DNA of 64,000 bases from Rebecca billardiae RCC1528. Lineage: Eukaryota; Protista; Haptophyta. Positions 3,778-55,019 of the stretch are shown in pieces. Position numbers and translations under genes: made by a program. Below the pieces are notes generated by a model that was given only the letters and a program-made list of their open reading frames with translations, did no database searches and had not been told where the DNA came from. The stretch is from NCBI GenBank assembly GCA_965240325.2, contig OZ251230.1, positions 2,356,001 to 2,420,000 on the forward strand. The letters are read 5' to 3'. Positions within the stretch are counted from its first letter, which is position 1. The number at the start of each line of letters is the position of its first letter.

Positions 3778-5254
3778 TCCGCTGAGGTGGCGGCTGGGTC
3801 CGCACTGGCACGGATGACGGAGGCTGGGCGGAGCGGAGTTTGCCGCGCTTGCGGATGAACTCGGCGCCGTCGGTGCTGACTGCGCGGTCGCGGCATTGGG
3901 CTGAGAGCGTGAGTGCGCAGCCCGGGGGGCATCCAGCTGGCCGCCCCGCGGCGGACGGCGGGGAGGTCTGGCCACTGATGATGGCAGCAGCGGCGCTGAT
4001 GCGGGGACGCGCGGCTCCGGCGGCGGACCAGCTGGGCCTGCGGCCTGTGGCTGTGCGTGGGCTGATCTGGTCTTCTTGACAGATGCATCATCGGCGCGTC
4101 GGCTGCTCGCGTAATCGGCTGACACTGCCAGTGCGCTCCGACGGACATGGGCGCGGTCCGCGTCATCTACAACCGTAGATGACGCCTTCCGAAGACGCCT
4201 TCCGAAGGCGCGCGGGGATTCATCACTCATCACCGATTAGTCATCAGCCGCGATGGCAACGCACAACAATCGTCACGACCGATTCAGCAGCCGCGATAAT
4301 ATCATTGATTCAGCGCGATATATATATATCGATATCGATGATGACGACGATGATGATCCGACGCATCATCATCGTCAGAGTGAGACAGAGTCAGATCCGC
4401 GATGATCAGTCATCAGATCATATATATATATATATCCTGATTCATCCGCTGGGGCTGGCCGGAACCGATGACGATTCATCAGGCGATGTCAGTGACGAAT
4501 CGAATCGTCGCGGCTGCTGATGATCGCGACAAAGCAGCATCAGTGCTGGACCCGTTGCAAGCGTGAGCGCCGAAAAAACGACACTTCGGCGGCCTAGAGT
4601 GACGATACAGTCTTGCAGGCGGCGGCGGCGGCGGCGGGAGCGTGACAGTGCGTCTACCATCACCTTCCGTCTAGCGCGCTACGCCGCGCGTGCCGGGTAG
4701 TGCCCCCGGCCCGCCGCAGCAGCAGCCTCGACAAGTGAAGAGACGATGACCGCGGACGCAGTGCCGCCGAGTACAGCCTGCATCCACTTGCCGCGCGGCG
4801 CGCACTGTAGTTGCACTTGCAGCGCTCGCGCTCGGCGAGCATGGGCGTGCGCTCAGGCGTGTCAAGTGCTGTCTCGTCGGCGCGCTTTCGCCTGCCACCT
4901 CGTGCACCCGTGCACGCAGCTTCATCGTCTTCATGAGGACTGCTGTGCTGCTGTCGCCATCACCCGAGTCCGAGTCGCGCGCGGTCGCGCGCGCGGTGGC
5001 AGCTGTGCACCGCAGAGTGTCACCGCTGCTGCTTCGCAGCAGTCATCAGCAGCTGCGTCGTCATCCTCCTCGTCGTCGGCTTCCACTGCCGCAAGAGGGA
5101 ACGCTGCCAAAGCTGCAGTTGGGAGGCAAGCCCTTCTCTCTTCCCACCGCGGCGCGCGCGCTGCGACAGCCCTCCCCGTTTCCTTCTCTTGACCACCTGC
5201 TGAGGGTTTTGCAGCTCGATCTCGGCAACGGCAGCACCTGGCGACGAACGGATT

Positions 5255-5295
5255 GGATTGGTGCACGGGGAATTGGATTCCCCGTGCACCAATCC
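5255..5295. repeat. Perfect 19-bp inverted repeat with 3-nt loop
   Basis: ggattggtgcacggggaat-tgg-attccccgtgcaccaatcc. Confidence 0.9.
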
Positions 5296-5422
5296 GCTCG
5301 GCTCGTCGCGCCCGGCAGCCATCGCCCAGCGCTAGTTGCAAAACCGTATTTTCACCGGTACGTCGCATTTTCACCGCCCTACGGTCACTCACCCGTGCAA
5401 CGGGTCGCTGATGATCGTCACA

Positions 5423-7375
5423 TATGGTTGTATAACCGCTCGGTTATGCGGGTATAACTCACCGGTAGCCCTCATGAGGGCGGGCTGGCAGCCCGGGTCC
5501 GGCTGCCCGAAGGTTTTCCGGTCGTCAAGCCGAGCCAGGCCCGGACAGGGGGTGGGCGCGGATCCGCGCAGTAGCTTGGCAAGCGATGCGCCTCTCTGCG
5601 CGCGCTCGCTGGCTGCATCCGCGGCTCGGCGGCCGGCGTGGCTGCTGGGTCACCGCGGCGCTGGTGGCTGCCCCTCCTCTGGGAGTTGTTTCTTCCAGGT
5701 GCGTGTGCGTCGGCGGTAGGCCGCCCTCAGCCCTCGCTCTCTCCACTCGTGCACCTGCCCTGCTTGCTGCCAACGCGCGATCGGGCTGTCTGTCGCTTCT
5801 GCTCTCTGCGAGGGCACCTCGGACCCCTCCGGGTGCTCTCTGCTTTCGATGGGGGCGCCTCGGAACCGCTTCGAGGCGTCCCCGTCTGCAATCGTCCCAT
5901 GCTCTGCTTTCGATGGGGGCGCCTCGGAACCGCTTCGGGGCGTCCCCGTCTGCAATCTTCTCATGCTCTGCTTTCGATGGGGGCGCCTCGGAACCGCTTC
6001 GGGGCGTCCCCGTCTGCAATCTTCTCATGCTCTGCTTTCGATGGGGGCGCCTCGGAACCGCTTCGAGGCGTCCCCGTCTGCAATCTCCGCATGCTCTGCT
6101 TTCGATGGGGGCGCCTCGGAACCGCTCCCAGGCGTCCCCGTCTGCAATCTTCTCACGCTTCGCAGTCTCGCTTGCCTTCATCGCCTGGCGGGTGGGTGCT
6201 GCTCTCTCCTTCTCTGCCGCCTCCTCTGCAGTCTGCAGTGCACTGCTGTGTGTGGGGATGCGACCTGCTACCTTATCTGACGCTACGCGTGCGCGTGCGT
6301 GTCTCGCGCCTGCTTCCCGCCTGCGCCGCCGCCGCCGCGCATGTCTTTGTGCCTACTCGTCGCACTTACCGTCGGGTTCGTCCTCACACAATCCTGCGGG
6401 GAGCCCCTCTGGGCCTCGGCCGCCTTCGGTCCTCGCGCTACCCCTTCGGCGGCCTCGGCCTCTTCGGGCCCCCGGCCACCACCCCTACGGGGTGTGGCAT
6501 TCCACACCTCCTTCTGGGTGGAGGCCCTCGAGGCCTCTGCCCCCTGCGGCGCCGCGCTCGGCCCAAACTTGCGTTGGGGGAGGGCGTCGGCTGCCAGCGC
6601 CTGCGGTCTATCTACGTGCTCCATCGAGTACTTCCTCTTCGGCGTCTAGGCGGTCGGCTTCTGTCGGCGTAGTTGCTCGAATGCATCGGCGAGTCCTTTC
6701 TGGTCGGCGTCGCATCCTGGACGGCTTCGGGGGTGTGACCTAGTCACCTCACGCGTTTATCAACGCGGCCCCCACCTCAATCTACTCTCATGTGGGTCTA
6801 CCGAGTGAGTTATGGTTGTATAACCGCTCGGTTATGCGGGTATAACTCACCGGTAGCCCTCATGAGGGCGGGCTGGCAGCCCGGGTCCGGCTGCCCGAAG
6901 GTTTTCCGGTCGTCAAGCCGAGCCAGGCCCGGACAGGGGGTGGGCGCGGATCCGCGCAGTAGCTTGGCAAGCGATGCGCCTCTCTGCGCGCGCTCGCTGG
7001 CTGCATCCGCGGCTCGGCGGCCGGCGTGGCTGCTGGGTCACCGCGGCGCTGGTGGCTGCCCCTCCTCTGGGAGTTGTTTCTCCCTGCCCTCCCACCCGGC
7101 TGGTTGCTGGGTGGGCATGGCCTGGGTGCGCGCGGTGTCGGGGGGGGTGGAGGCCCTCGAGGCCTCTGCCCCCTGCGGCGCCGCGCTCGGCCCAACCTCT
7201 TCGGCGTCTAGGCGGTCGGCTTCTGTCGGCGTAGTTGCTCGAATGCATCGGCGAGTCCTTTCTGGTCGGCGTCGCATCCTGGACGGCTTCGGGGGTGTGA
7301 CCTAGTCACCTCACGCGTTTATCAACGCGGCCCCCACCTCAATCTACTCTCATGTGGGTCTACCGAGTGAGTTAT
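5423..7375. mobile_element. Non-autonomous split-direct-repeat element (A1-internal-B1-A2-B2), PAT/Ngaro/TOC1-like tyrosine-recombinase retroelement architecture
   Basis: A1 5423-5693 matches A2 6811-7081 (271 bp). B1 6634-6813 matches B2 7196-7375 (180 bp), and 6516-6566 matches 7145-7195. TAT occurs at the left end, the B1/A2 junction and the right end. No recognisable RT or YR ORF. Confidence 0.7.
5838..6158. repeat. Minisatellite, 5 x 64 bp, inside the split-repeat element
   Basis: tgctttcgatgggggcgcctcggaaccgc... recurs at 5841, 5905, 5969, 6033 and 6097. Confidence 0.95.
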
Positions 7376-7513
7376 ATCGATGATCGAAGACGATCGATCG
7401 CGATCTGACTGCTATACTTAGTACGTAGGTCGTTACGTAGTACAATCAGACTCATTACCGTTATTATTATTTACCGCGCCGTACAAAATGCGCGCGCGCA
7501 TCGTCATATATGC

Positions 7514-18024: not shown

Positions 18025-19731
18025 ATGATGGCGGATTCGACGACTAGCCCTGCGGTCAGGCTCCTCTTACGCAAGTCGGCGCGTGGGGACGCGCGTGCGA
18101 CGTTCCTTCTGGCGCGGCGGGCTGAGGATGGCGAGGGCATCGCACAGGACCACCGCGAAGCCTTTCGCCTGTACACCCTCGCCGCTGAGCGCAGCTTTGC
18201 AGATGCGCAGTCGAAGATGGGCCACATCTACGTGAACGGCGCGCTTGGGCAGCCAAAGGACCTCGAGGCAGCAGCGCGCTGGTACCGGCTGGCGGCCGAG
18301 CATGGCTACGCTCCGGCGCAGTGCAATCTGGGCCTGCAGTACGCACAAGGCGAGGGCGTGCCGCAGGACTGGGGCGAGGCGGTGCGCTGGTTCCGGCTGG
18401 CGGCCGAGCAGGGCCACGCACTCGCGCAGTGCAATCTGGGCGTGCGGTACGCACGAGGCGAGGGCGTGCCGCAGGACTGGGGCGAGGCTGTGCGCTGGTA
18501 CCGGCTGGCGGCCGAGCAGGGCGACGCTCAGGCGCAGTGCAATCTGGGCGTGCGGTACGCACGAGGCGAGGGCGTGCCGCAGGACTGGGGCGAGGCTGTG
18601 CGCTGGTTCCGGCTGGCGGCCGAGCAGGGCGACGCTCAGGCGCAGTGCAATCTGGGCGTGCGGTACGCACGAGGTGAGGGCGTGCCGCAGGACTTGGGCG
18701 AGGCTGTGCGCTGGTTCCGGCTGGCGGCCGAGCAGGGCCACGCACTCGCGCAGTGCAATCTGGGCGTGCAGTACGCACAAGGCGAGGGCGTGCCGCAGGA
18801 CTGGGGCGAGGCGGTGCGCTGGTACCGGCTGGCGGCCGAGCAGGGCTACGCACTCGCGCAGTGCAATCTGGGCCTGCAGTACGCACAAGGCGAGGGCGTG
18901 CCGCAGGACTGGGGCGAGGCTGTGCGCTGGTTCCGGCTGGCGGCCGAGCAGGGCGACGCTCAGGCGCAGTGCAATCTGGGCGTGCGGTACGCACGAGGCG
19001 AGGGCGTGCCGCAGGACTGGGGCGAGGCTGTGCGCTGGTACCGGCTGGCGGCCGAGCAGGGCGACGCTCAGGCGCAGTGCAATCTGGGCGTGCGGTACGC
19101 ACGAGGCGAGGGCGTGCCGCATGACTGGGGCGAGGCGGTGCGCTGGTTCCGGCTGGCGGCCGAGCAGGGCTACGCACTCGCGCAGTGCAATCTGGGCGTG
19201 CGGTACGCACGAGGCGAGGGCGTGCCGCAGGACTGGGGCGAGGCTGTGCGCTGGTACCGGCTGGCGGCCGAGCAGGGCGACGCTCAGGCGCAGTGCAATC
19301 TGGGCGTGCGGTACGCACAAGGCGAGGGCGTGCCGCAGGACTTGGGCGAGGCTGTGCGCTGGTACCGGCTGGCTACGCAGGGAGGGAGCGCATATGGGCA
19401 CTTTCGGCTTGGAGAGCTGACGCTGCACGGCACGGTAGTGGAGCGTGACGTGGAGGAGGCAGCTCGGCTGTTGCACCGTGGCCAAGAGCTCGATCCAGCC
19501 CTCGGAGACAGTGTACGCGAGGTCCTGGCCGTGGAGGCTGGGGAGCGTGACGTGGTCTCCACGTGCTGCATCGCCTGCGGACGGACAGGCCGTGGTCTCA
19601 AGAAGTGCGAGCGGTGCCATGTGGCGGTCTTCTGCTCGCGTGAGCACCTGCGCAGCTCGTGGAAGGTGCACAAGCCCCACTGCAACGCGTGGGCTTCGCA
19701 GTGCGATGAGGACTCCGAGGAGGCAAGGTGA
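18025..19731 (+). CDS. Sel1-like repeat protein with C-terminal MYND zinc finger (copy 1; 10 near-identical 36-aa repeats)
   Basis: Repeat unit AQCNLGxxYAxGEGVPQDWGEAVRWxRLAAEQG with 108-bp period. C-terminus CIAC-x9-CERC-x5-CSREH-x4-WKVHKPHC. Confidence 0.92.
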   Translation: MMADSTTSPAVRLLLRKSARGDARATFLLARRAEDGEGIAQDHREAFRLYTLAAERSFADAQSKMGHIYVNGALGQPKDLEAAARWYRLAAEHGYAPAQCNLGLQYAQGEGVPQDWGEAVRWFRLAAEQGHALAQCNLGVRYARGEGVPQDWGEAVRWYRLAAEQGDAQAQCNLGVRYARGEGVPQDWGEAVRWFRLAAEQGDAQAQCNLGVRYARGEGVPQDLGEAVRWFRLAAEQGHALAQCNLGVQYAQGEGVPQDWGEAVRWYRLAAEQGYALAQCNLGLQYAQGEGVPQDWGEAVRWFRLAAEQGDAQAQCNLGVRYARGEGVPQDWGEAVRWYRLAAEQGDAQAQCNLGVRYARGEGVPHDWGEAVRWFRLAAEQGYALAQCNLGVRYARGEGVPQDWGEAVRWYRLAAEQGDAQAQCNLGVRYAQGEGVPQDLGEAVRWYRLATQGGSAYGHFRLGELTLHGTVVERDVEEAARLLHRGQELDPALGDSVREVLAVEAGERDVVSTCCIACGRTGRGLKKCERCHVAVFCSREHLRSSWKVHKPHCNAWASQCDEDSEEAR

Positions 19732-20057
19732 ACTTCGGACACTACAGTTATTTACTAATAAGACGAATATAAGCGAGACGCGGCACACAGCAGCTGTACT
19801 CAGTATTCTCGACGGCGGTACTACTGGTAGTAGCTATAACTATATAGTCCGCTAGACGGTGCCTGCTAACGCCATGTCATGTCTCACTCGGCTGCTCCGG
19901 TCTCGGCTGAGCCATCACTAAGACACTACCAGTCGTCAAATGAGTTACGGTTATTGTATCATTATCAATAATAACGACAATATTATTCATCAGCAATCTG
20001 CTGCTAACTAGTCGTGCTATAGTACAGTTTTACTTATATAGCGCAGTATAGCGCTAT

Positions 20058-20201
<144 letters not shown>

Positions 20202-30983: not shown

Positions 30984-31607
30984 CTGTGAGCCTGCGGAGG
31001 CCCTGGCACGAGCTGCACCACGGCGGCGCGGGGCCTCGGCGGCCTGCTCGCTGCCGCCGAGTCCGGTGCGTGACTGCCGCAGGCCGGACTCACCGTCCGG
31101 TCCGTCGGTGGCTGGCGGGCTACATCATTGTCAAACTCAAAGGCCTGCCGTTGGCGTTGAAGGGCGACGAGCAGACTGTGTCAGTGATGCAGTGTCACTG
31201 TGACTACTCACTGCGTCTGCGGTGGTCGTCGCCGTCGGCGGAGCCGCGCCGGGCGCCGCGCCCGCTGGCCTGCACGGCACTGCCGCCCCCCGTGCCGCCC
31301 GTGAGTCAGTCGTGAGTGCACTGCTAAGTGCGCACGGTGCGCGCGGCGGCGCGGTCTGCGCGGTGCGCCACGATCAATCGTCGTCATGCCAGTGTCAGTA
31401 GCACTCACCAGCATATCAGAACGTCAGCAGTCTTAATAAGCTACACAGACACCGCTAGTGGCGGCAGCATCGCGCAGGCCGGGTGAGCGGGACAGACAGC
31501 GGGTGAGTGGACCGCGTCCGTGACGACTCGTCGACTGCGGTCGACCGCCACCGCGCCTGACCGACGAGGGGAGATAGGCACGGCGTTGCCATGGCGTACG
31601 CGCAGCG

Positions 31608-37060: not shown

Positions 37061-37730
37061 GGGAAAAGTTCAGAACCCCGCCGATTCGCGGCGGCTTGTG
37101 CAGAATCCCGCCAAATCGGCCAGAACCTCGCGAGGGGCTTTTCCGGACGCGATGTCCCCCAGAAGTCCGATTGTCGAACATTCGGGCAAGCCACGCGCAC
37201 GAAGATACCGAACCCCGCGATTGCGCCGAAACGGCGCAATCGCGTCTTTTGACGTCGCCGATTACGCGCAGTACCCGCGAAATGAACCCCGACGGCGAAA
37301 CACTTAATCAAACACGGGGTTCGCGTCGTTTCGACGCCCTCGCGTGCTGTTTCGGCCGCGGGGCCCCTCGCGGCTCTTCGGAGCCCGCAAAAAAGCCCCG
37401 AAGAGCCCCCATCGCCCCCACGCGCGCACCTCGCGCGAACGAGGTGCGCGCGCGCGCCCGACGCGCGCGCGCGCGCGCGCGTCGGGCTGCGGGCGGGGGG
37501 AGCGGGGGAGGCGCGCGATGCCGCCGCCTGCGCGCGCGCCGCCTCACGCGCGCGTGGCCTCCCGGCGCGCGCGCACGCGCTCTGTCCGCGTGCGCCTCCG
37601 TTGGTTTGCATAATGTGCACGCCCGCCTCCTGGCGAACTCGCGCGCGACGGCCGTGTGGCGCGCGCGCGCGCAGGCGGAGCTGGTTCGTGCGGCGTTACG
37701 CGCAAGCTACGTGCACAACATGCCGCCGCC
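37061..37730 (+). repeat. Left TIR of the MULE (670 bp)
   Basis: Reverse complement of 52234-52903. ORF-track translations across the two TIRs are identical. Confidence 0.95.
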
Positions 37731-40700
37731 TGCGCGCGCGCCGCCTCACGCGCGCGTGGCCTCCGGACGCGCGCGCAGGTGTCGCCCTTTGCCCGCTTTG
37801 GTGGTTGTACGACGGAACTGCTGCGCACGCAAGGACGATGGTGCGCGCGGCTGGGTGGCGGTGCTGCGCGCGGGCGGCTGGCAGAGGGTACTGCCTGCAC
37901 CGACGTGCGTGCCGGTGCCTCCAACGTCGCACCCCGCGCCCCCCACCCCCACCCCCCCCCCGCCCCTTTTGCCCGCCATCGTGCATCTGTTGCGCACCGT
38001 GCATCTGTCGCGCGCAGGCGGAGGCGTCATCTGACGTGGTGCAGCCCAGGCGCGTCGACGGCACCACTGTGCGCGCGTTGCGGATTGACGAGTTCGTCAG
38101 CGGAGCGGAGAGCGCGCTGAATGCTCTGCGGATGACTCCACAGAACACCCCGTGGGAGTTCAGCTTGGTCCTCGTGCTGTGCGTGCTGGGCTCGGTGAGC
38201 GCCGCCCAGGCTGGTGGTCGTGTTGGTGGCACCGGCTGCGTGCCGCCGGTGGTGTCGGATCTGGCGAGTGCGGAGGCGCTTCTCTGCTTCACCGAGTGCG
38301 TCGGTGTGCTGGCCTCAGCCGAGGCTGTACTGGACCTGGGCGGCGACATGGGCGGCTCTTGCGACAGGCTGTCTAGGCTGTCGTCTGCTGCCCTGTGGTT
38401 CCGCGCCCTGGCGTTTGCGGCGATGCATGGCGCCGGCTGCGCCGGCGCTCCCGGCGCCGAGCACTTGCCGGTGCCCACCTCGCTGTGCCCAGCTGGGTGT
38501 GACCCGGTGTCGTCGCCCCCGCCTGGCGATGCGCACGGCGCCGCTGCCGGAGGCGCTGCCGGCGGTGGGTTGCTAGGTCACGACCCGACCTCGGACTCGG
38601 GGGGGGGCTCTGTGGGCGGGGGTGCGCCGGCGCAACGGCGGCGGCAGGGGTCGCCGCCGCCGTTGCCTCGCGCCCCTGCTGCCATCGCGGTGCGTGCGGC
38701 ATGGGCGAGCTCGCCTCTGCAGGTGAAGGTGGCGCTCGCTGCGCTGTGCGCGCCCCGCCCGGACGCGGGGGACATACACGGCGTGTTCTCGACTGTGGAT
38801 GCGCGAGCGGGTGGCACAGGGGCTAAGCCGGCGCCGGCCGTGGAATACTACGCGCGCGCGGTGTTCGGCGCCGACGCCGGATGCCGCGAAGACCTCTTCG
38901 CCGCCTTTGTGCGCGTGGCGTCGGCGTCAGCCCCCGGCGTGTCCGACGCGCACGCGGCAGACCACCTGCGTACCCGTGCGTACACGAGCTTACGTGGGGC
39001 GCTGGCCCCCGCGCCGCCGCTTGCGGACCACGCGCTCTACATGGAGACGTCTTCGTCTGTGCAGGCGGGCCAACGGGCGGATCTGCTCTGGCGGGAACTG
39101 CTGCGCGCGCGCGCCACGTGGTTGCGCGCTGTGGACCAAGCGCTGCGCGCTGACGCCGAGTGCCGCCGTGCGGCCGGCCACGCAGTCCACGACGATGCAG
39201 ACGGTGCAGACTGCGACCGGCGGGTCGCTGCCGCGCGGGCGCTGCGCGCGTCCGTGTCTGACGTCGGCGACGACGGCCGCGCTGGGCTGACGGCCTTTCT
39301 CGACGCGTGCGAAGGGCGTGCGCTGTGCGAGGGCTGGCTGGCGCGGCCGTTGCTGCACGCGATCTCCGTCCTCGAGCGTCGCACTGTGTGGGCTGTCGTC
39401 ATCCCGCTCACGCCCGCACTGGTGCACGTCGGCGTGGGCGCACGTCTGCACCCGTTCCTCGACGCGACGTTCGCCGAAGCCTTGGTGGCCGATGCAGCGG
39501 TGGCGATGCCGCCGGTGACGCTGGTGGTGACTCTGGTCGGCGCGCACGCCGTCGCCGGCGCCGCCGCGCGCGTGTCCGGAGAAGCCGTGAGCGCGGTGTC
39601 AGGCGCTCTTTCGGCGGGGTGCCCTCGCCCGCCGGGGGTGCCGCAGGACCCCTCACCGGCCCTGCGCGCACCGCCACCGCGCCAAGCCCCGCCGAACACC
39701 CCCGCGTCGTCCCTGAGCCTGTGCGACATGCTCGTGCACAACTTGGCGGTCCAGCACGCGCTTCGCCGAGCCTTCGGCGACGCTGCGGCCACTGCCCACA
39801 GCGTTCGCATACCACCACACGCTGTGCAGGCGTTGCGCGACTACGTCTTTGTCCACGCCAGGTTAGGCGGGTCGGGCGACGCCTCCATGCCCCTCCACGC
39901 TGCGGACCATGCCCTCATCCGCACTGCACTCGCCTATCACTCCGCCGATGCCGCCGGCGTCGCCGCCGAGCAGCGCCGCTGGGGGGTGGGCGACCACGGC
40001 GCCGAGGCGGGCACGCCGACAGCGGTGCTGGACTGCCCACCATTCGCGGACGTGGTGACTACACTGCAGGCCTTCATGGAGGCGGTGTTCGACGTGGAGC
40101 ACTCCAGCCCCGTTCTCACTGCGTGGCACGTCTTCGCGCGCCCGTCGCCTGCGGACGCGCACGCGGGCGCAACCAGCGATGGCCAGACCGCAGCGGGCGA
40201 GGCCACCACATACGGCTGGCACGTGGACAGCGACATGGTGCACGACCCCCACGTCTGGACGGCCGTGCTCGTCGTGCACGTGCCGTCGCACCCCACGGGG
40301 GGGAACCCCTACCCGCTCGAGCTCCTGGACGCGGGCCCGGACGGACACCCCGTCGCCGCTCCGCTGCATGGCGGCGACGTGGAGGGCGGCGACGTGGCAG
40401 GCACCGTGCACATCTTCCCGTCCATGCTGTACCACCGCTCGGCGCAGGCGCCGCGGGGCGGGACCGCCCCTGCGCACAGCGACATGTCGGGGAAAAAGCC
40501 GCGGCGCGCGCACACTCTCGACGGCGATGTCATCAAGGCTGTGTTCTTGTTCGGGTCGCCCGAACTCGCCGCCGCGCTGCGCGCGGCGGGCCGCCACCGC
40601 AGCCCGATGGTGCTGGCCGCGCCGGCAGCCTCGCCTGCAGCTCTCGTCTCTGCGCCTGCGCCGCTCACGCCCCATCGCTTCGTCCTCACGCTCGAATCGG

Positions 40701-43700
40701 GCTTGCGGCACCTGTACAGCCGGAAGCTGCGCGCTGGCGCGCCTGGCGACGCGCAGGGCGCATTCCCCGCATTCAACATGGGCTCGCCCCAGCACCAGCA
40801 GTACGTGGCCGACTGCGTCGAACACGCGCTGGGCGACGCGCCGACGGCCGATCCCGAGGAGCTCTTGCGCGGCGTGACGCAGTGCGTGCATGTGCCGCCA
40901 GAACGCGCGCAGCGCCAATGGGCGCACTCGGCGCTTCTGCTCGCGCTCCCCGGTGCTGACAACGGCGACGCGTCGCTGACAGCTGCAGCCCGCTCGCCAC
41001 CTGCGGGCCCGCACGGGCAGCGCGACACGTCGCACGGCACGGGCCCTGTCCGTGCAGGGCCGGGGACACCGACGCCGCGCGGCGTGGACGGCCGCGCGCC
41101 AGGCGCCGACGCCGGCCCACGTCCTCCGGGGGCCATCAGCAGCTCGCCACCCGTCTGCCCCTGGCCTGCCCCCCCTCCCGCTGCGCGGGCGCCGCTGTTG
41201 TGCACGCAGGCGGACGCCTCCGCCGCCTGCACGAGCCCGTGTGTCGTCGTGGCGGTGCATGGCGCGCCGGCGTCCACGGGCTGTGACGGCGGCGGCGGCG
41301 GCGGAGGTGGTCCGCACGCCAATGCGCGCGTGCTGCGCGAAGGGTCCCCCGGCAGCGCCGATGTGCCAGACGGCGGCGAGGCGACTGGCGCGCATGGCGC
41401 CGGTGGCACTGCCGCCGCGGTTGCGCATTGCACGGCCGCGCCGACGCAGAGCGTGCTCGGCAACGCCGTGCGCCTGGGCGAGGAGCGCGTCGACGGCGCC
41501 GGACCGAGCGCGCTCGCGGGCGTTTTGGCCTCGAACGTCCAGGCTCGCGCCGTCGGTGGGCCTGGCACGGACAACGCGGACATGCCGCTGCCGCGGCCAC
41601 CACATGGTACCCTGCACTTGGCGCCACACGAGCTCAGGCTGGCATTCCGACCCGGCCAGGCCGCTCATGTCGGAGGCCACTTTCACGCGGCGACGGCGAC
41701 CGACGAACAACGGCAGGCTGCGAAGGCAGTGGGCACTGTTGTGCAGGACCTCGGCCGCAGTCGCTCGGCGCACACGCGTGCAGCTGCGAGCGGCAACGCA
41801 CCCCTTTTCGTCCTGAGCGCGGACTGGCAGACGCTCCTCCTCAGCGAGGATGGCGCGGGGGCCGTGAGTGGTGTCATCTCGCAGCCGGACGCCGGCAGTG
41901 CCGCGCTCGCGCGGATCGACGAGTGGGAGGCCACCGACCCACTCATGCTCTGTGAGGACGAGAGCGCGCGCTTCTGTCCCAGCGGCGACCGCGACGATGT
42001 GTCCGACGACGCTCGGGAGGGCTCCGCCCACGCTGGCGCAGCCGGTGCGTCAACTGCGCACGACCCGCTCGCGGCGCTTGTGACGTGCCCCCCGTCCGGC
42101 GCGTGCGCGCAGCCTACGCCCGCCACGCGCACGGCCGTCCCAGGCGCAAGCGCCGCGGCAGGCGCGCAGGGCCAGCCCTTGCCACAGCACCACGGCGGAG
42201 ATGCCGAGTACCACCCACTGCCCAAGCAGTCCAGAGCGGGGCAGCACCATGCGCTCGCGCCCGTGGAAGGCTGGAAGGTGTTGGGCTCGAGGCCGCCACG
42301 CCCGCACACGGAGGTGGTCCGTGACTCCTCGTTGGCGAGCGACACACTCGTGCGACCCGGCACGCGCTTCGAGCGCCTCGCGGACGCCATCACCCTCGCA
42401 GCGGAGTGCGCCGTGCACCGGCGGATCATGCCGCCGTCCGCCCAACTGGACCATTCCAAGCTGAGGGTGACGTGCACCACGCCGAACTGCGCGTTCCGTG
42501 TGCTGGTGGGCCCCGCGCCGGATCACGCCGTGTGGGGCCGACCGGCGTGGTACGTGGAGGCATCCTCCTCACACAGCCCGGACTGTTACAACAACGCCGG
42601 CGGCGCCGGCTCGCGCGCGAACCCAGTCACCTCGCCGAGTCGGTCGCGGACCAAGGCGCGAGTGCGCGTGTGGCCCTACTCCGCCAAGCAGTTGGGCAAG
42701 GCCGTCGAGCACGACTGGCGGGCGCGCTTGCGCGAGCGCGGCGCCACGCACGCGCAGTTGGCGTACGGCGTCACGGAGAGCAAGGCCGTCGCGCGCGCGC
42801 TCGTCCCGGAGAAGGTGGGTGAGAGCCTCGTGCGCAGGGCGCTCGCCGTCGCGCGCGAGCAGATTTACGGCGACGACAGCGCCATGTCGCGCGACCTGGT
42901 GGCAGTGACCGCCGGGCTCTCGGCGGAGGGCAACGCGGTCGCGCCGATCGTCTTCGCCGCGGACACAGTGCACAGCGACGTGCTCGCGATGTTCCGCCGT
43001 GTGCACGACAGCGCCCAGCGCTCGGTGCCGCTCGGCGCCAGGCGGCCCTTCGACCCGGAGGAGCCCTCGGTGAAGCGCGCCATTGACGAGGTGCGCGGGA
43101 AGAAGGCCGTCGGTGGCTTCCACTACGTGCCCAAGCAGGCCAAGCAGCTCTACCGTGAGCACTTCCTGGCCAAGGGCAACCGCGCCGTGTTCAGCGACGC
43201 GTGCCACCTGCACAGGCCGGCGAGCGGCGGTGGCAAGCGTGCCGGTGTGCGCCCCCCACCCCACCCCCCCCCCCCACCCCTTCCCCCCTTCCCCCCTTCC
43301 GTGTCCTGCAGGCCGCACACCCACGCACACACACACATGCACACCCGCCCTGGCACGCACATTCACCCGCACCCCGGCCTTCTCCGCCGGTGCCACCTGC
43401 GCGCGTCACAGGCATGCTCTTTGTGACGCTCGCAGTGAACGCCAACGGGCAGCTGTTCGTGCTCTGTGTGTCGTACATCGTCGACGTCGAGTGCCTAGAC
43501 TCGTGGTGCGCGCACGTGCGCTACTTGAAGCAGGAGCTGGGCGGTGACGACGTGTGGAACGTCGACGACTCCGTCACCATCTCCGACGGGCAGAAGGGCC
43601 TGCGCGGCGCGTGGAAGCTCCTCTGCCCCCGCAGGCACCTGTTCCTGTGCACCTTCCACAAGCGGGACAACTTCATCACGGGGTACGCGCACACGGCGAA

Positions 43701-46700
43701 CGACGTCAACAAGATCCTGGAGGTCTTCGACCGGTGCGTCCAGGCGTTGTACGTCGAGGACTTCGACCGGGCCTGGGCGGAGATGCCCGAGTCGGGCAAG
43801 CGCATCATCGATCTCATCCCGCGCGCCGAGCTCTTCCCTGTCTTCGCGCCGGTGTGGATGCGCGGCTACGTCACGGGCGCGCCCGCGGAGTCGTTCATGA
43901 AGTGGCTGCTCCCTGTGCGCAAGTCGCAGGGCCCGGTGTGGATGCTGCTCGACCTGCACGACAACCTCTACCGCCTCTTCGCCACGCACCGCGCCGTGGC
44001 CGTGCGCCACGCCCTCAACCCCGACCCCGATCGCGACCTGCACGGGCTGCCACCGCGGCACGTGCCGTACGTGCGCGGCGCAGTGCAGGACGCGCGCGCC
44101 ATGGGCGGCGCCGAGTGCAACCTCGTCGCCGACGGCGAGCACGCCGGTTGCTACCGCGTGCTGAGCACCACGGACCAGTCCAAAGAGCGCTTTGTGCACC
44201 TCGACAACTTCCTGTGCTGCGGGCTGCTTCGCCGCAAGCGCCTGCCGTGCTTGCACTTCTGCCTCGTGTGCAACCGCGTGAACGAGCCGGTGTGCTCGCT
44301 CCTCCCCGAGGACATGCGCAGCGCCACTTGGTACGCGCAGGTCGGGCTCGGCGTCACGCAAGCCCCGACGGGCGCAGTGCTGTCCATCACGAAGCTGGAC
44401 GTCATCACGCCGCCGCGGCGCCTCGAGGACGCTGTGCAGCCCCTTCTGCTACCGTCACAGCAGTTGCAATCGCTCTTGGCGGAGTACGTCGCCGTGCCGG
44501 CGATGCCCGCGCGCGCGGGCAGGCCGGCGAACGCGGACCGCGCGCCCAGCTTCTGGGAGCGAGGGCCGCGCGGAGGCCGCGCCCGCCGCGCGCCGCACTC
44601 GCGCTCCGAGTACGACTCAGTGCCCATCGGGCGCTCGACGCAAACGTACGTGCGGCCCTTGACCGCCGACGGCGGCTTCGCCGCGCGCGTGCGCGAAGCG
44701 GCGAACTCGACGCTCGAGCAGGTGCTCAGTGAACTCCCGTCGCACCTGTACGGCATCGCGCTCCAGGACGTGCTCTGCACGCGCAACGTCAACGTGCGCG
44801 TGGGCGGGACCGTGGCCGCGCCTCAGACGTTCAACCAGCGGCTGCGCGCCTGGTCCACGTTCGACGCGAGGACGGCGGCCCTGCTGCGCTGCTGCGCGTG
44901 CTACGACCCGCAAGCCGACGACCTCGGCGCTGCGTGGCCGGCCAGCGCGCCCCCGGTGGACCCCAGGCTAACGTGCCAGGGGTGCGCGTGCTTCATCCAC
45001 GCACCCGCGCAATGCGAGTACGTGTGGCATCTGGGTCCGATGGACAGTGGGCTGTACATGTGCACGTGCTGCTACTTCCTCCTTGTCGCCGGCGCGTGGA
45101 AGAAGCTGCGCGCGTGGCGTGCCGAGGAGGAAGGCGCGCCGGCTGCGGCGCCGCCTACGGGTGCCAGGCCGCAGGAGGCGGCGTACGCGCGCGGGCCCGG
45201 CGCGCCCCGTGCGCGCGCTGGCGGCGGCGACGGTGCGTGCGGCGGCGGGGGCGCGCGCGCCTCTGGCGCGCCAGGTGGCTCGCGCACACCTGACGCCTCC
45301 GCCGGCGCGGGTGATGCGCCCGCGAAGCCCGCCCGCCAGCCGCGCAAACCGCGCAAGAAGCCACACAGCGCGCGGGCGTACGCGGCCCAGGCTCCACCGG
45401 GCCCGTCAGTGCGCTTCGGCGCAGCGCCGCCGGCGTCGCGTGGCGCGCCGCCACGCACCTCGACGGGGGCGGGCGCGGGCACCGACGCAGCTCACGCGCG
45501 CGGCGGTGCAGTGCCACCGCCGGGTGCCGTGCCAACGGCGCCCGCGGATGACGGCGACGGTGCAGGCCCTCCTCCCTGCGCGGGCACGCCAGGGGTGGCC
45601 CCGCCAGCGCCCGGCGCGGCGAACGTCATGGCGGAGGCTGAGGCGGCATACGCCGCTCTCGGCGACCGCCACGTCGCGGTCAGGAGGGTGGTCACGAGCG
45701 CCGCCGGCGTGGGCGAGGCGTCGGCCAACCGTTTCATGCGTGCGCGCGAGCGGGCGCCCGCGCACACGTCGTTGGACAACACACTGCGCACCGCCTGGAA
45801 GACCGCCAGAAGCATTCCCGACAAGATCATCGCCCAGTTCGCAGCGCGCGCGCGGCCGGGGCGCTCGGAGGCGGGTCCGGCCGGGGCGGACGAAGGCTCT
45901 GGGTTGCCTGGCACCGCCGCGCACGAGCCGCCGTCGGCCGCAGCCCAGCTCATGCCCGAGCTCGGCCTCCCACTCGCGCGGTGGGACGCGAGCCGCGCGC
46001 GCGCGCGTGAGGCGCCATTGCTGGCGACGTCTGCCACCGGCTTGCCATTGTGGTCGCTCGCCGGGGACGGTCGGGGTGGGTCCAGGGCCCCGACCGTGGC
46101 CTACGTGCTGAAGACGTTGTTCGGCCCGACGGTGCGCGAGGTGGACGTGCCCGGCGACGGGGACTGCTTCTTCCACGCTATCCTTGCGCACGATTCGGCC
46201 GCCCTCGCGGCGGCCCCCACGCGCGCGGCGCGCAACGCGCTTATGCAGCGCATGAACGTGCGCGCCAAGCGCGCGCGCTCCGCGACGGTGTCCTACATGG
46301 CGTCGTTCTTCCACCCGACCGGCCCCAACGAGTGCGGGCCGACGATGTGGGATGGGCAGCCCATGGACGGCGAGCTTGCGGAGCGTGAGCTCGCCGGCGT
46401 CCTGGCCGTGCGCGCCGACGAGCTGCGCAAGCGCGGCACGGGCCAGGACATGGAGCTCGAGGGCCGATGGGCGGGCACGAACCGGACCAGCCTGCGGTAC
46501 GCCGCGCGTTTGTACCGTGGCGGCGCGGACTACGACTCGGCCTGGGAGGAATTCCGCCGCGGTGGCGAGTGGACGCCAGGCTCGCAGACGCAGGGCAGCG
46601 CGTCGCGTGCGCTGGGTGTGCACGTCCTGGCGTTCACCGCGCGCGGCGATCGTATGGACGCAGACAAGGTGAACCTGTTCCCGCGGGTGTCGTTGTGGCG

Positions 46701-47385
46701 GGCGCCCAAGCGAGCGCGCGATGCGGCGGCGGACAGCACCACACGCCGGAGGTGCTTCTCCGAGGGGAGCTTCGACCTGACGAAGAAGGAGGACGTGCAC
46801 GCGTTGCGCAGGCTCGACCTCGGCACCATGGGCACTGACTGGGTGGCCGTCGTGTACCACCCAGGGCACTTCCACGCGGTGGTGGATACCGGCGCGGACG
46901 CCGCGCCGGCCGCGCGCGCGCTCTCCGCGGGCGGCGAAGGGCGCTGGCCGTACGTGGCGGCGTGCGCGGAGCGTCACTGCGCGAAGGCGCGTGCACGCTG
47001 GCGTGCGCTCGTGGAGGACGACGAGACCCACAACGGGGCGTCGGAGTATCAGCCCACGCTGGCGCCACACATGGCCGACCGCATGCTGCTCTCGCGCGTG
47101 GACGAGGTCGGGCTCACTCGCTACCGTGGCGCCACGCGGCGCTTCAACACGCGGGTGTTCTCATTGCACGCGCCCGCCGGCCCCGAGGACCCCGCGGAAG
47201 GCGAGCCCATGGACTACGACAGCGCGGACGACGACCGTGTCCTCGCGCAGCCGGCACTGGACTCCCGCCTTGACGGGTACGAGGAGCACTCAGCCACTCG
47301 TTTGCTCGCGCGCTTGTCGCGGGAGCGCGCCCGGCGCGCGTCTGCGCACGCGCCCGCGGGCGCCGACGGCGGCAGTGGCGAGTAG
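37720..47385 (+). CDS. MULE transposase polyprotein (~3,120 aa; predicted exons 37720-37887, 38018-43244, 43412-47385): 2OG-Fe(II) oxygenase-like domain, MuDR-type Zn DNA-binding domain, DDE core, SWIM, PHD-like finger, OTU-like protease
   Basis: Oxygenase-like YGWHVD...HIFPSMLYH...IKAVF. DBD VTCTTPNCAFRV...HSPDC. DDE core FSDACHL, ISDGQKGL, CTFH, PAES. SWIM CCG...LPCLH. PHD-like CCAC...CQGC...H...C...CTCC. OTU VPGDGDCFFHA...YHPGHF. Exon 1 and the second donor site are inferred. Confidence 0.8.
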
Positions 47386-48179
47386 ATTGGCGGATGAAGT
47401 GGCGTCCGTGCCCCGCAGTGGGAGACGGGCACGTTACGGGGAGTTGGGCACGTGCGGGGGAAGAGATGTGGGATGTGCGTGACTGGGACTGCATGTCGAT
47501 GGGTGCATAGATGGGGGCTCGGTGAATTCGTGCCGCTTCAGATGGTCGGGGGCTGAGTCGCCCGCGGACAAGTGCAGGGCTGCCTCAGGCTCAGACGGCA
47601 CGGGGAGCTGTGTGATAAGGGTGCTCCGCATCGGCGGCACCAGCGGCTGTGTACTCCTACTGAGGCAGGTGACACTGAAGGTGACACGCCAACTCGCGGC
47701 GGGAAGCACTGTCTGTGCGGACGACGCGCACTCGGACGAAGCCGGCCGATAGAGCACCGTCGGCCAAGGACTGCGGGTGCAACTGCATGGCGGAATACGG
47801 CAAGGGCAAGGTCACTGCGCATGCGCATGCGCGCGCAGTCAGACGGTGCACCGGGTCGGCGCGCAGGCACCGGTGAGCAACGGGGGGTCAGGCGGTGTGC
47901 ACGGGCGTGGTGCCGCGCGCACCGGAGACGCGCAAGCCCGTCGCGCGGCGCGCACCAGTATGGATGGGCACGGGTAAGTGCGACACGGTGTCGCGCACTG
48001 GCCGGGCGCGCGGTGCGCGCGCACGCCGCCGCCGCGCCGCCCCACCGGCCCGGGCGCGTGCGCCCAGCGCGTGAGCAGCGACGGCGGCGGCGCACTGCTG
48101 GCGGCGGTGTGCGCCCTCGGCAGCACCGCAGCCGACGTGCGTTCGGCGCACCGCCTCCGCCCAGCGGTCGCTCGCACGG

Positions 48180-51100
48180 TCAGCGCCGGCTCGCGCCCTC
48201 GCGCGGCTCGGTCCTTGCCACCAAGCGCTCAAGGACAGTGCCGGTCTGTGCCAGCATGCGTGTGAGATCGTCTTGCTGCGCGCGCATGACGGCCAATTCG
48301 CGCTGGCCCGCTGCGGTGCGCTCTTCGATGCCGGCGGTGCGCGCTTCGATGCCGGCGGTGCGCTCGTCGAGGCCGTCGAGGCGCGTCGCGACGGGTTCGA
48401 TCATCCGCGACAGGCGCGCCGCGACAGCCTCGACGACCTCGTCGTCGCCGCGCCCGTGCTCGTCGAGGTTGATGGTGGGCACGTCGGCTTGCGAGGCGCG
48501 CGGCTGGGCAGCGCCACGTCTGGCGACTTTCCCCCCGGCCGGCGCGGCGCCCCGGGCGGGCGCGCGCGTGGTGGGCGGGCGGGTGGTCGCGGCATCCGGG
48601 GGCGCGGCAGCCCGTTGCGTGGAAGCGCGCCGCTTGCGCGCTCCGGTGGCGGCGGCAGCCGCGGGCGCGTCCGCGGGCGCGGGGGGGTGCCACGGCACGT
48701 CCAGGCGCCCCGCGTACATCTTGGGCGCGTCGGCGCCGTTCGGCGCCTCGGCGCCGCCCGCAGCGCGGGACGGCACGGGGGCAGCCGGGTGCGTCCACAG
48801 CACGTCATTGCCCCTCGGCTTCTCGTCCTGCATGATGGTGAAGCACAGCCCGCGGAAGTCGGTGATGGGGGCAGTCTCGTCCCTCAGGCCACGCTCCGTG
48901 GGGGGCGGCGCGCCAGCTCCCTGCATGGGCGGGTACGTGCACACTGTGAAGAAGAGCGTGCAGAAGTTGCCCGCGGGCTTCGGCACGCCGCGCGTGCGCT
49001 TCTGTGACTTGCGGTTTCTCATCTCCTCATACCTCCACGAGTGCGTGTTTCCGGGCACGAACATGAAGGAGAGCAAGTCCGCCGGGTTGGGCGCCCACTG
49101 CGACCCCGCATCAGCCCCCTCCACCTGGTTGTACAGGGCGATGCAGTCCTCGGACACTGCCTGGATCTCGAAGTACGGGATGCGCGCGTCGGCTGACGGC
49201 GCAGCGGACTGCTTCTGCTGCTGCTTGGCGGTGCCCCCCGACGTCGCGTCGGCGCGCGCGCCGTCGGCGCCGTCGGGGGGCGGGAGCACGAAGCGCGCGC
49301 GCGCGACGCGGACCTTGGTGAGGAACGAGTACTCGTCCGCGCGCAAGGTTTGGTAGACGTCTGCCAGCGCGTCGTAGCGCAAGTGAGGGAGGGAGACGCG
49401 CTGCGTCAGCACCGTGGCGCACGCGATCGCCGCTGCCAGGCACGTCGCCCCGGCCCCACGGCGTTTCAGAGCCTCCGCGTGGCACGCGAGTGCCGCGAGG
49501 GTGTCGCCTGAGTCGCTTCCGGCGAAGCGCGAGAAGTCGAAGGACGTGCCCATGCGCTCAGCGAGATCGAGCCAGGGTTCGATCGGCGTGCCCTCGAGCG
49601 CGCACTCGGTCGGCCTCCCGGCGAGACACACCACACGCAGCACATCCAGCAGGTCGCCAGAGGCGGGCGTGCGGTACAGCTGCGGCAGCGCATCGGGCGC
49701 GTGCGCGCGGAGACTCCCCAGGAACGCGAGCACGCCCTCTGCGATGTACGCAGCGTGCTGCAGGTGCGACTTGGGTGCGCCCGCGTCCGTCCACGTAGTG
49801 GGAGCGGCGACGCCGGTGAGGGCCGTCCAGCCCTGCGCCGTGAGCAGAATGTCGGGCGCCGCGAGCATCCCCGACGGGATTTTGGCCACCTCGTCCTCAG
49901 CGTCGAGCACCGGCGCGCCGCTAGTGCGGCTGGCTGGGCCGCCGCCGGCGCCGCCCGCAGCCGCGCGTGCGCACGCGGGCTCATCCGGCGGTGGCGGCGC
50001 CATGGACGCCAGCTGCACGGCGACGATGTCGCCTCTGCTCACGGCAGTGCCGAAGTCGGCGTCCGCGTAGTGCGTCACCTCGGCCGTCAAGGAGGTGACG
50101 AGTTCGGCTTGCTGCAGCACGCGCCACCCGTCCGTGTCCCGGACGGCGTACGCCATCTGCAGCGTCGCCTCCGCGGACGGGCGCGCCGCTGCGCCATCGC
50201 TGGCGTCGGCGCCATCGCCGCCGGCATGCGGCGCCGGGCGAGCGCGCGGGCGAGCGCGCACTGCCACCACGGCGTGCAGCAGCAGCGGAGGCGACGCCGC
50301 GGCGGGTTCCGACGAGGGCGTCGGCGCCGCGCCGCACGCCGCCGGTTTGGGCACCAGCGCGGGCCACACACGCGGGACGTTGGCGAGGTCGGCGGGGATG
50401 CCCAGCGCCGCGTGCTCAGCTGCGGTCCACAAGAGCGCCAGCGGCTGGCCCCAAGCCGATGTGCGCTGCGCGCGCGGCACGACCGACGGGCGCTCTGCGC
50501 CGGGCAGGGGCGCAGTGACGGCCAGGTGCGGGCCGGGGGCGTACGGCAAGGGCAACAGCTGGCGCCCCTCAGCCTCCTCAGCGCACTCCACGAAGTGAGC
50601 GCGCGCAGCGCGCAGGGCAGCGGCCGCGTCCGCGGCACCTGCGCCTCCCGGCGCCGGTGGTGTCGGCGGGGAGCAGGCGCTGAAAGATGCGCGCACCGCA
50701 GCCGCGACGGCGGCGGCCGGCAGGAGGGCGCCGGCTTCGGTGAGTTCGCGCACGCTCTCCACCGACGTGAGCACGGCGTGGTAACGGCGGACCACCGCCG
50801 TGCGTGAAGTCAGGCCGACCGCGTTTTGGGACGTTATTGTCCGCGCCCCGTCGCCCAGCTGCGCGCTGTGCTTGTCCATGAAGATCATGAACGACGGCTT
50901 CAGACGCGCGACAGGAGGGTGCTGCGTGAACGCCGAGGATCCGCGCGTGTCGAACGCGTGCAAAGCGGTCGGAGTGACGAAGACGGCGAGTGGCGACGGG
51001 AGTGGCGACGGCGCCGGCACCGACTGCCGCTTCGCGGCACCGCGCAAGACAGAGGTAGAACCGGCGGCGGCGCGCGGCGGCGTGAGGTGCTGGCTCACGC

Positions 51101-52244
51101 GCGCCATCATCTCCTCCGTAGTGACGCCGCCGGCATCGCCGGCGGCGTCAGCGGCGGCGGCGGCGGCAGCGGCGCTGCTGCCGCCGCCGCCGCCGCCAGG
51201 AACACCGCCGCTGCCGCCGCCGCCGCTGCCGCCGCCGCCGCCGCCGATCCCACCGCCGCTGCCGCCGCCGCCGCCTGCCCCATCGCTGGCGGCGGGGGGG
51301 ACTGCGGGGACGGTGGCGCCACCGCTCGCGGCGGCGCCGGCGCCGGCGCCGGCGCCGGTGGCGGCGGCGGCGGCGGCGGCAGCAGCGGTGTCGGCCGCGG
51401 TGGCCGCCCCGCCGGCACCGCTGCTGCAGGCGGGGCGGCCACCGGTGCCGGCAGGGCGGCCACCGCCGCCGACACCGCTGCTGCCGGCGCCGCCACCGTC
51501 ACCGCCGCTGCCGCCAGCGGCAGCGGCGGTGGCGGCAGCGGCGGTGACGGTGGCGGCGCCGGCAGCAGCGGTGCCGGGTCGGCGGCCACCGCCGCCGACA
51601 CGACGGTTCCCCCCCTTGGATGTAGTGGTGGCAGGGTCGCAGCGGCCGGTGTCGCCACCGCCGCAGCCGGCGGTGGCGACACCGGCGGCACCACCGGTGC
51701 CGCGACCGGTGGTGGCGGCGGCGGCGTCGCAGCACGTCTCCGTTGCGCGCAGGCCGCTGCGCACGCCTGCGCCGCCACCCTGGGCTGCACCACTGCCAGC
51801 ACCGCCGCCAGCGGCGACGCCGCCACCTGCATTAGCAAGTCGTGCGCTCGTGCGTGACGGCGCCTGCGAACCGGGCTGCGGCGCCGCCGCCCGCTGCGGC
51901 GACGCGCCGGGCGTGGCCACAGATGCGCCAACGCCCGTCGCGAGCGGCAGCTTCGTGAGCTGCTCTGGCGTCACCCGCCTTGGACTCGCTGCCATCTGGG
52001 GGTATAGAATCGTACCAGCTGCGAGCGCCCACTGTTCCGCGTCAACGTCGGGTAGCGGCCCGACGATGTACGTGTAAGAAGCGCGAGGCTTGCCGTCGCG
52101 CGTGGGGACTGCTTTGATCTCGCACGACAAGACAGTGGCTGGAATGCCCTCACCATCAGCAGACGCACGCTGCACGAGCACGTTCGACTTGACTTGGAAG
52201 TAGTCCTCTTTGGACTGCGGCCGCATCGACTGCGGCGGCGGCAT
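48180..52244 (-). CDS. Second MULE gene (1,354 aa, unknown function; positional analogue of mudrB), with Gly/Ala-rich linker and C-terminal coiled coil
   Basis: Uninterrupted ORF from the ATG inside the right TIR (MPPPQSMRPQSKEDYF...). Several globular-looking blocks and terminal heptads LDERTAGIEARTAGIEERT. Confidence 0.75.
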   Translation of the reverse strand: MPPPQSMRPQSKEDYFQVKSNVLVQRASADGEGIPATVLSCEIKAVPTRDGKPRASYTYIVGPLPDVDAEQWALAAGTILYPQMAASPRRVTPEQLTKLPLATGVGASVATPGASPQRAAAPQPGSQAPSRTSARLANAGGGVAAGGGAGSGAAQGGGAGVRSGLRATETCCDAAAATTGRGTGGAAGVATAGCGGGDTGRCDPATTTSKGGNRRVGGGGRRPGTAAAGAATVTAAAATAAAAGGSGGDGGGAGSSGVGGGGRPAGTGGRPACSSGAGGAATAADTAAAAAAAAATGAGAGAGAAASGGATVPAVPPAASDGAGGGGGSGGGIGGGGGGSGGGGSGGVPGGGGGGSSAAAAAAAADAAGDAGGVTTEEMMARVSQHLTPPRAAAGSTSVLRGAAKRQSVPAPSPLPSPLAVFVTPTALHAFDTRGSSAFTQHPPVARLKPSFMIFMDKHSAQLGDGARTITSQNAVGLTSRTAVVRRYHAVLTSVESVRELTEAGALLPAAAVAAAVRASFSACSPPTPPAPGGAGAADAAAALRAARAHFVECAEEAEGRQLLPLPYAPGPHLAVTAPLPGAERPSVVPRAQRTSAWGQPLALLWTAAEHAALGIPADLANVPRVWPALVPKPAACGAAPTPSSEPAAASPPLLLHAVVAVRARPRARPAPHAGGDGADASDGAAARPSAEATLQMAYAVRDTDGWRVLQQAELVTSLTAEVTHYADADFGTAVSRGDIVAVQLASMAPPPPDEPACARAAAGGAGGGPASRTSGAPVLDAEDEVAKIPSGMLAAPDILLTAQGWTALTGVAAPTTWTDAGAPKSHLQHAAYIAEGVLAFLGSLRAHAPDALPQLYRTPASGDLLDVLRVVCLAGRPTECALEGTPIEPWLDLAERMGTSFDFSRFAGSDSGDTLAALACHAEALKRRGAGATCLAAAIACATVLTQRVSLPHLRYDALADVYQTLRADEYSFLTKVRVARARFVLPPPDGADGARADATSGGTAKQQQKQSAAPSADARIPYFEIQAVSEDCIALYNQVEGADAGSQWAPNPADLLSFMFVPGNTHSWRYEEMRNRKSQKRTRGVPKPAGNFCTLFFTVCTYPPMQGAGAPPPTERGLRDETAPITDFRGLCFTIMQDEKPRGNDVLWTHPAAPVPSRAAGGAEAPNGADAPKMYAGRLDVPWHPPAPADAPAAAAATGARKRRASTQRAAAPPDAATTRPPTTRAPARGAAPAGGKVARRGAAQPRASQADVPTINLDEHGRGDDEVVEAVAARLSRMIEPVATRLDGLDERTAGIEARTAGIEERTAAGQRELAVMRAQQDDLTRMLAQTGTVLERLVARTEPREGASRR

Positions 52245-52903
52245 GTTGTGCACGTAGCTTGCGCGTAACGCCGCACGAACCAGCTCCGCCTGCGCGCGCG
52301 CGCGCCACACGGCCGTCGCGCGCGAGTTCGCCAGGAGGCGGGCGTGCACATTATGCAAACCAACGGAGGCGCACGCGGACAGAGCGCGTGCGCGCGCGCC
52401 GGGAGGCCACGCGCGCGTGAGGCGGCGCGCGCGCAGGCGGCGGCATCGCGCGCCTCCCCCGCTCCCCCCGCCCGCAGCCCGACGCGCGCGCGCGCGCGCG
52501 CGTCGGGCGCGCGCGCGCACCTCGTTCGCGCGAGGTGCGCGCGTGGGGGCGATGGGGGCTCTTCGGGGCTTTTTTGCGGGCTCCGAAGAGCCGCGAGGGG
52601 CCCCGCGGCCGAAACAGCACGCGAGGGCGTCGAAACGACGCGAACCCCGTGTTTGATTAAGTGTTTCGCCGTCGGGGTTCATTTCGCGGGTACTGCGCGT
52701 AATCGGCGACGTCAAAAGACGCGATTGCGCCGTTTCGGCGCAATCGCGGGGTTCGGTATCTTCGTGCGCGTGGCTTGCCCGAATGTTCGACAATCGGACT
52801 TCTGGGGGACATCGCGTCCGGAAAAGCCCCTCGCGAGGTTCTGGCCGATTTGGCGGGATTCTGCACAAGCCGCCGCGAATCGGCGGGGTTCTGAACTTTT
52901 CCC
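52234..52903 (-). repeat. Right TIR of the MULE (670 bp)
   Basis: Reverse complement of 37061-37730. Confidence 0.95.
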
Positions 52904-54889: not shown

Positions 54890-55019
54890 ACTTCGGACAC
54901 TACAGTTTACTAAGAATAAGAGACGCACACAGCTCAGTATTCTCGGTTCTGGTAGTAGTGCCTAATCTCGCCTGCCTGAGCTGTGCATGCGTCTCTTATT
55001 CTTCGAGTAAACTGTAGTT

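Follow-up and report, generated by a model that had tools for sequence, protein, structure and literature searches.

How did the DNA behind one gene copy come to hold a series of short insertions that are missing behind its paralog? The question is raised by two copies of a Sel1-repeat and MYND-finger gene on the forward strand of the window, that is, the whole 64,000-nt stretch of Rebecca billardiae RCC1528 DNA that was analyzed. Copy 1 lies at 18025–19731 and copy 2 at 52979–54889. The 3' flank of copy 2 (54903–54958, forward strand, 56 nt) fits inside that of copy 1 (19745–19833, forward strand, 89 nt) with no mismatches, an embedding that was possible in none of 2000 shuffles. A previous sequence-only reading of the window had located both flanks correctly. 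The eleven indels that it counted are a valid finer split, the minimum being nine insertion blocks. Its claim that substitutions are absent is parse-dependent, because the block at 19820–19825 can equally be read as a 3-nt insertion plus one T/A substitution. The 33 nt of micro-insertions in copy 1 include TT-A-TT (19748–19752), AA-T-AA (19757–19761), GA-C-GA (19762–19766), a TA duplication (near 19768), G-C-G (19773–19775), GC-G-GC (19780–19784), and a stretch of stacked events (19788–19827).

Between the two copies, the 3' coding caps show 10 substitutions and a single 9-bp indel, and the 5' caps show one substitution and no indels. The previous reading had named only the in-frame 9-bp indel for the caps; substitutions are present as well. 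Judged by these differences between flank and cap, the flank evolved by insertion and the adjacent coding DNA by substitution. In copy 1, the in-frame 9-bp insertion (19713–19721, forward strand) yields GAGGA-CTCC-GAGGA, a direct repeat with an inverted middle that resembles a hAT-type (Ac/Ds) footprint. Neither copy 2 nor a related contig in run X1 has it, so it is derived in copy 1. A relative of the cap in that run (record 4) has its own stop-codon insertion behind window position 19712, and the GT-A-GT with which this insertion starts fits the complement rule given below. Homology between the paralogs begins about 8 bp upstream of the start codon (18020 and 52971), and their promoters are unrelated. 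No close third paralog was returned by exact look-ups, two homolog searches, and a representative search (best identity 55%).

The direction of change was read from copy 2, whose flank is part of a 120-bp inverted-repeat, MITE-like element located 3' of the stop codon (54899–55018, fold z = −7.9), namely its left arm and its loop; the copy-1 flank is the swollen form of these same parts. Within 54903–54937, the right arm of this element has the short state wherever copy 1 is longer. As the right arm carries the short state independently, the short form is ancestral and copy 1 gained bases, so that the differences are micro-insertions, as previously named, rather than deletions. In the simplest reading, the element runs from CAGTTTACT to AGTAAACTG between two TA dinucleotides, and TACAGTT ends are found at six intergenic sites of the window. 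CACTA ends were also considered for this repeat, which starts CACTAC at 54898, and were rejected because a closing TAGTG is missing on the right; ends of the TA-CAG type suit it better. Metagenome contigs contained no matches to the MITE arm. Directly after the inverted repeat lies a 625-bp element (55020–55644) with 20-bp terminal inverted repeats (95%) and TT on each side, possibly a 2-bp target duplication. Its ends are AG...CT, unlike the CA...TG of elements of the CACTA-Mirage-Chapaev-Transib (CMCT) clade.

Each elementary event duplicates 2 bp (yz) and adds one base n that is the complement of either y or z (+3 nt). Less often, the outcome is yzyz (+2, mainly TA, AT, and CG) or y-y*-y-z, in which one end is trimmed, or two complementary bases are added. 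Six of the nine flank segments are accounted for by this complement rule, and two of nine by pure duplication; three require additional steps under the rule. CG-A-CG violates its simple form, and segment nine, parsed by hand, requires a two-base addition. The remainder of the copy-1 scar field extends over 19834–20059 (forward strand), and an (AT)70 tract at 20060–20200 occupies the center of the field. Across 19745–20059, there are 21 motifs of the complementary type and none of the other type. The insertion of GCT between GTGCCT and AA that had been claimed beyond the flank is present, as CT-G-CT at 19863–19867. The claimed intensification of the pattern toward the TA tract is a matter of motif density (7, 4, and 10 per 100 nt), because homology past 54958 is barely distinguishable from chance (17 of 300 shuffles reach its score).

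The previous reading had raised the possibility of a targeted system; one aimed at this locus is not supported, as nearly all intergenic fields of the window bear the signature. At non-palindromic mixed dinucleotides, n was complementary in 286 of 313 yz-n-yz motifs from 20 intergenic fields (4.07 kb), the fields and several single-event parses having been picked by hand. An objective, GC-based field definition gave 119 complementary and 27 other motifs. Among the homo-dinucleotides, complementary bases outnumbered others for AA-T-AA (10:1), TT-A-TT (9:3), and GG-C-GG (9:1), and CC had no complementary lead (3:5). Motifs other than perfect triplet copies, which are beyond the reach of a single slippage step, numbered 98 complementary and 12 other, against 55 and 15 under a null that preserves trinucleotides. 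Enrichment singles out a repeat length of 2, in agreement with the proposed 2-nt duplication (enrichment 0.69x at k = 1, 1.77x at k = 2, and 1.15x at k = 3). The proposal that the added base is non-templated failed: a random-base model enriches both classes of middle base equally, and the observed values were 2.05x for complementary and 0.41x for other bases.

The bias is confined to intergenic DNA, as had been suggested, with 62 complementary and 72 other motifs in coding DNA, that is, no bias. Young transposon DNA likewise has none (20 versus 19). The events stack in intergenic DNA, chiefly 3' of stop codons, and differ between alleles; 194 motifs lie behind stop codons versus 129 before start codons (p = 0.0004). 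In non-coding DNA, substitutions usually predominate; short indels are several-fold less frequent and tend to be deletions. In these intergenic fields, stereotyped insertions exceed substitutions many-fold, both among paralogs and among alleles.

Other alleles of the organism were represented by contigs of runs ERR14847148 and ERR14847151. One of them (L008) is identical to the window over 1990 bp before and 680 bp after an independent scar field at 4490–7510. In about 210 bp inside this field, 13 or more small indel blocks but no more than one substitution separate the two, and L008 has AA-T-AA, T-A-TG, GT-A-GT, and AT-A-AT forms that are absent from the window. It also lacks two mobile elements, one at 4549–5406 with a GCTG duplication and one at 5423–7375. 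Reading its junction as a deletion of 2.8 kb with a hairpin scar of 7 bp was rejected, since it is the empty site of these two separate elements. In a second allele (L001), a segregating ACT insertion at 31402–31403 is the sole intergenic indel in 3.3 kb apart from a poly-T slip. At a third field, which adjoins a second (TA)n tract (63396–63450), alleles L015 and L016 differ by CG, CA, and other short indels; L016 matches the window over 2349 bp and then diverges by short indels. Indel-to-substitution ratios are given rather than an absolute rate, because identical flanks may reflect homogenization. Among single events between paralogs or alleles that brought in a new base, the base was complementary in eight of nine (4.3 expected, p = 0.013). 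Since alleles carry such scars and single events follow the rule, the process is real, recent, and not peculiar to the Sel1 gene.

The first 500 bases of L015 (window 60713–61200) belong to yet another haplotype, which carries about 2% substitutions and one indel of 3 bp; divergence between haplotypes is therefore patchy. The last 40 bases of L015 and L016, beyond window position 63450, diverge completely into GC-rich sequence, which is probably another inserted element where the window continues to a (TA)71 tract.

Could the insertions be artifacts or the outcome of ordinary slippage? An assembly or consensus error in the copy-1 flank is highly improbable. It is true that 19719–19948 is known from the assembly sequence alone, reads having matched just low-depth relatives of the coding cap. 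However, the insertions are not of the homopolymer type, and contigs of the two independent runs bear similar insertions, missing from the window, at three other window fields. The kilobases beside these scars are identical to the window, which argues for a recent process and against assembly error. Replication slippage in spacer DNA that is simple and richer in AT, followed by substitutions that blur the copies, has more in its favor, as perfect triplet copies make up about half of the allele differences and perfect motifs are enriched more strongly than imperfect ones (3.7x versus 2.0x). We nonetheless hold it to be very unlikely. Slippage cannot make the new bases in TT-A-TT, GA-C-GA, G-C-G, CT-G-CT, and AA-T-AA, and it would favor 2-nt copies, which are depleted. 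Tandem triplets are enriched in the six families that hold a complementary pair, and repeats of AAC, AAG, ACC, and AGG are not (12 versus 13). The set of features sought for slippage (perfect copies only, 1–2-nt units commonest, no triplet-family bias) was therefore not what the fields displayed. In forward simulations, four slippage models failed on the spectrum, with imperfect complementary motifs at 0.3–1.2x against the 2.05x observed, and duplication plus a random base failed as well. Duplication of 2 nt plus a complementary base matched the direction of the spectrum, a qualitative fit. Observed perfect motifs exceed this pure model and imperfect ones fall below it, so secondary slippage probably contributes.

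The best reading of the insertions is that they are scars from the repair of cuts staggered by 2 nt, the stagger being copied to a 2-bp duplication and the ends rejoined with bases of the fold-back (P) type. We give about an even chance to the cutter being a hairpin-forming transposon with 2-bp target duplications from the CMCT (RAG1-fold) clade. A cut-and-paste transposon of this kind would insert in open intergenic DNA and then excise, leaving the flanks sealed as hairpins. RAG, Transib, hAT, and MULE enzymes seal flanks in this manner (PMC5499845), and CMCT lineages produce target duplications of 2–5 bp (PMC12730594). A host nuclease would open each hairpin one base off the tip to give overhangs z z* and y* y; hairpin opening yields one to three P nucleotides (PMC10367010; PMC5873905). 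End joining with a one-base overlap, a step that we infer and take from no paper, would then produce yz-z*-yz or yz-y*-yz. For self-complementary yz, the overhangs would anneal fully into yzyz, lengthening (TA)n tracts. Recurrent cycles at shared landing sites would build spacer DNA of stacked scars, and the copy-1 flank would be an old MITE lying by chance in one such site.

Two predictions follow from the hairpin model. The +2 events should fall at TA, AT, and CG, and four of five were seen at such self-complementary dinucleotides (Fisher p = 0.011 from a hand-made table); AA-T-AA and TT-A-TT should be strong, and AAT repeats are in 7-fold excess. The (AT)70 tract of the copy-1 field was possibly fed by such +2 events. 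A symmetric joint that keeps both P bases, yz-rc(yz)-yz, is unenriched (15 versus 20). Membership of the scars among CMCT excision footprints is unproven: two features expected in sequence are present, namely a short duplication kept on both sides of the joint (k = 2, in paralog and allele events) and an added base complementary to the neighboring flank base, and the element itself is a candidate. As circumstantial support, mobile elements do land in the fields: one holds two polymorphic insertions, and Tc1/mariner-type scars are enriched. A weak point of the transposon model is the very high insertion-excision flux that it demands (at least nine events per 56 bp, and at least 13 per 210 bp between alleles). 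A search of the window for a CA...TG-ended element with a 2-bp duplication gave just chance pairs, and no filled and empty site pair at one locus was seen in the window and the contigs compared.

A sequence-independent cutter, either a domesticated or free-running RAG1-fold transposase or Spo11/Topo VI, could make the same scars by a 2-nt stagger and fold-back resealing with no transposon inserted. We consider this possible but doubtful; if true, the alga would have a standing "write" process as the main driver of its non-coding evolution and as a source of (TA)n growth. More narrowly, a Spo11/Topo VI-like host enzyme might cut nucleosome-poor or supercoiled spacer with a 2-nt 5' stagger, whereupon one end would be filled and the polymerase would turn onto the other 2-nt overhang, or a hairpin would be resealed, giving yz-n-yz. 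This unlikely account explains both the length of 2, in line with the k = 2 enrichment, and the high flux, and the greater density of motifs behind stop codons than before starts speaks for it. The accessible parts of the hotspot studies report that SPO11 leaves 2-nt 5' overhangs and that its breaks can be end-joined (PMC13532658), and that human hotspots have a local bias to insertion (PMC7615360); haptophytes retain a SPO11 (PMC9665070). Yet those same parts describe deletions, longer duplications, and ectopic fragments as the products, much more sparsely distributed and with no 2+1+2 scars among them. The simplest product, a plain 2-bp duplication at a non-palindromic dinucleotide, is depleted (0.5–0.7x), and the random or A-biased extra base expected from fill-in with N addition was not observed. 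Such enzymes would also be expected in the two related genomes without asymmetry described below. The previous reading had offered transposon footprints or Spo11/topoisomerase breaks; footprints fit better, although both enzymes are candidates as far as the letters alone can tell.

The other source of the same letters would be nick repair or Okazaki processing, in which a 2-nt flap displaced by a polymerase serves it as template for one or two bases and is then ligated instead of being removed. By its geometry, this would give exactly yz-z*-yz, and it requires no transposon. Ligation of an unpaired 3-nt loop is unusual. Flap switching by itself also leaves the specificity for length 2, the tight clustering in fields, and the differences between species unexplained, and we regard it as quite unlikely, even though PMC7615360 calls on template switching to explain imperfect insertions at human hotspots. 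As both yield the same letters, the host-enzyme cutter and the flap switch stay rivals of the hairpin-forming transposon.

Compared with known systems, the scars would work like RAG/Transib-type hairpin repair carried out at a 2-bp duplication. In V(D)J coding joints and Transib excision, the added bases likewise complement the adjacent base without offset, are one or sometimes two in number, and show occasional trimming. Here, in contrast, the added base sits between the two copies of a 2-bp duplication, nearly all products are +3, and the scars are stacked throughout spacer DNA rather than placed at programmed sites. CMCT transposons (Mirage, ESTA, Plavaka; PMC12730594) share the 2-bp duplication and have a RAG1-related fold expected to hairpin the flanks, but a published footprint spectrum was not found and the window is without such an element. 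The hAT elements (Ac/Ds; PMC5873905) leave hairpin-derived palindromic insertions that are end-joined, often via microhomology; they differ in their 8-bp duplication and in palindromes whose center is complementary to the base next to the element. The hAT offset rule was rejected for our scars, as the offset-only class was below expectation (21 versus 33, 0.63x) and the duplication length is 2. Net deletions are common in hAT and RAG joints, whereas none were seen in copy 1.

Tc1/mariner elements have TA-CAG-TA and TA-CTG-TA scars, which are enriched in the same fields, and the swollen element has TA-CAG ends. The window holds six such heptamers (0.7–1.3 expected), at 2730, 8701, 8719, 8735, 8770, and 29564, four of them grouped in a single field; they are of the typical Tc1/mariner excision type. 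These elements are limited to TA, however, and cannot yield scars at TT, AA, GA, GC, or CT. None of the flank insertions has the form of the Tc1/mariner footprint (TA, two to three terminal bases, TA), the six examples being elsewhere in the window.

The occurrence of the signature in relatives was assessed by the same counts. The window is GC-rich and of Pavlovales type among haptophytes, its alpha-tubulin falling in a 90% cluster with those of Diacronema lutheri and Pavlovales CCMP2436. Neither of these had an asymmetry, with 41 complementary and 44 other motifs in the D. lutheri sample (2.1 kb) and 405 and 407 in the CCMP2436 sample (36.7 kb). Single 3' flanks of relatives L003 and L006 had 18 versus 1 and 16 versus 1, respectively, and relative L007 had no complementary asymmetry. 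The signature is thus patchy within the group.

If the scars are transposon footprints, they would illustrate, in an extreme form found in nature, the long-standing idea that sequence diversity arises from excision footprints, and would provide a route to (TA)n growth without slippage. The rule itself, a 2-bp duplication plus one P base, was not found in the literature searched, nor were CACTA/Spm footprint tables, most older papers lying outside that literature. If a host enzyme is responsible, the mutational process would be an undescribed one. Whichever the cause, so sharp a signature lends itself to scoring in other genomes of any kind.

Several mobile elements and repeats were recorded in the window. 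The 858-bp non-autonomous element at 4549–5406 has GACCCGTTGCA ends and a 4-bp GCTG duplication, and contains a 141-bp palindrome (5205–5345). The element at 5423–7375 is of the split-direct-repeat type at a TAT site and, being missing from L008, is a recent polymorphic insertion. A 15.8-kb Mutator-like element (37061–52903) has identical 670-bp inverted repeats and a poly-T target, and one of its ends lies 75 bp upstream of the copy-2 start codon. At 4180–4545, a short unit is present in three decayed copies, two of them direct and one inverted, which surround (AT)n runs and differ from one another by small insertions of the scar kind. In a (GA)n tract at 63703–63779, nearly all pyrimidine interruptions (C, CT, TC) complement the neighboring purine.
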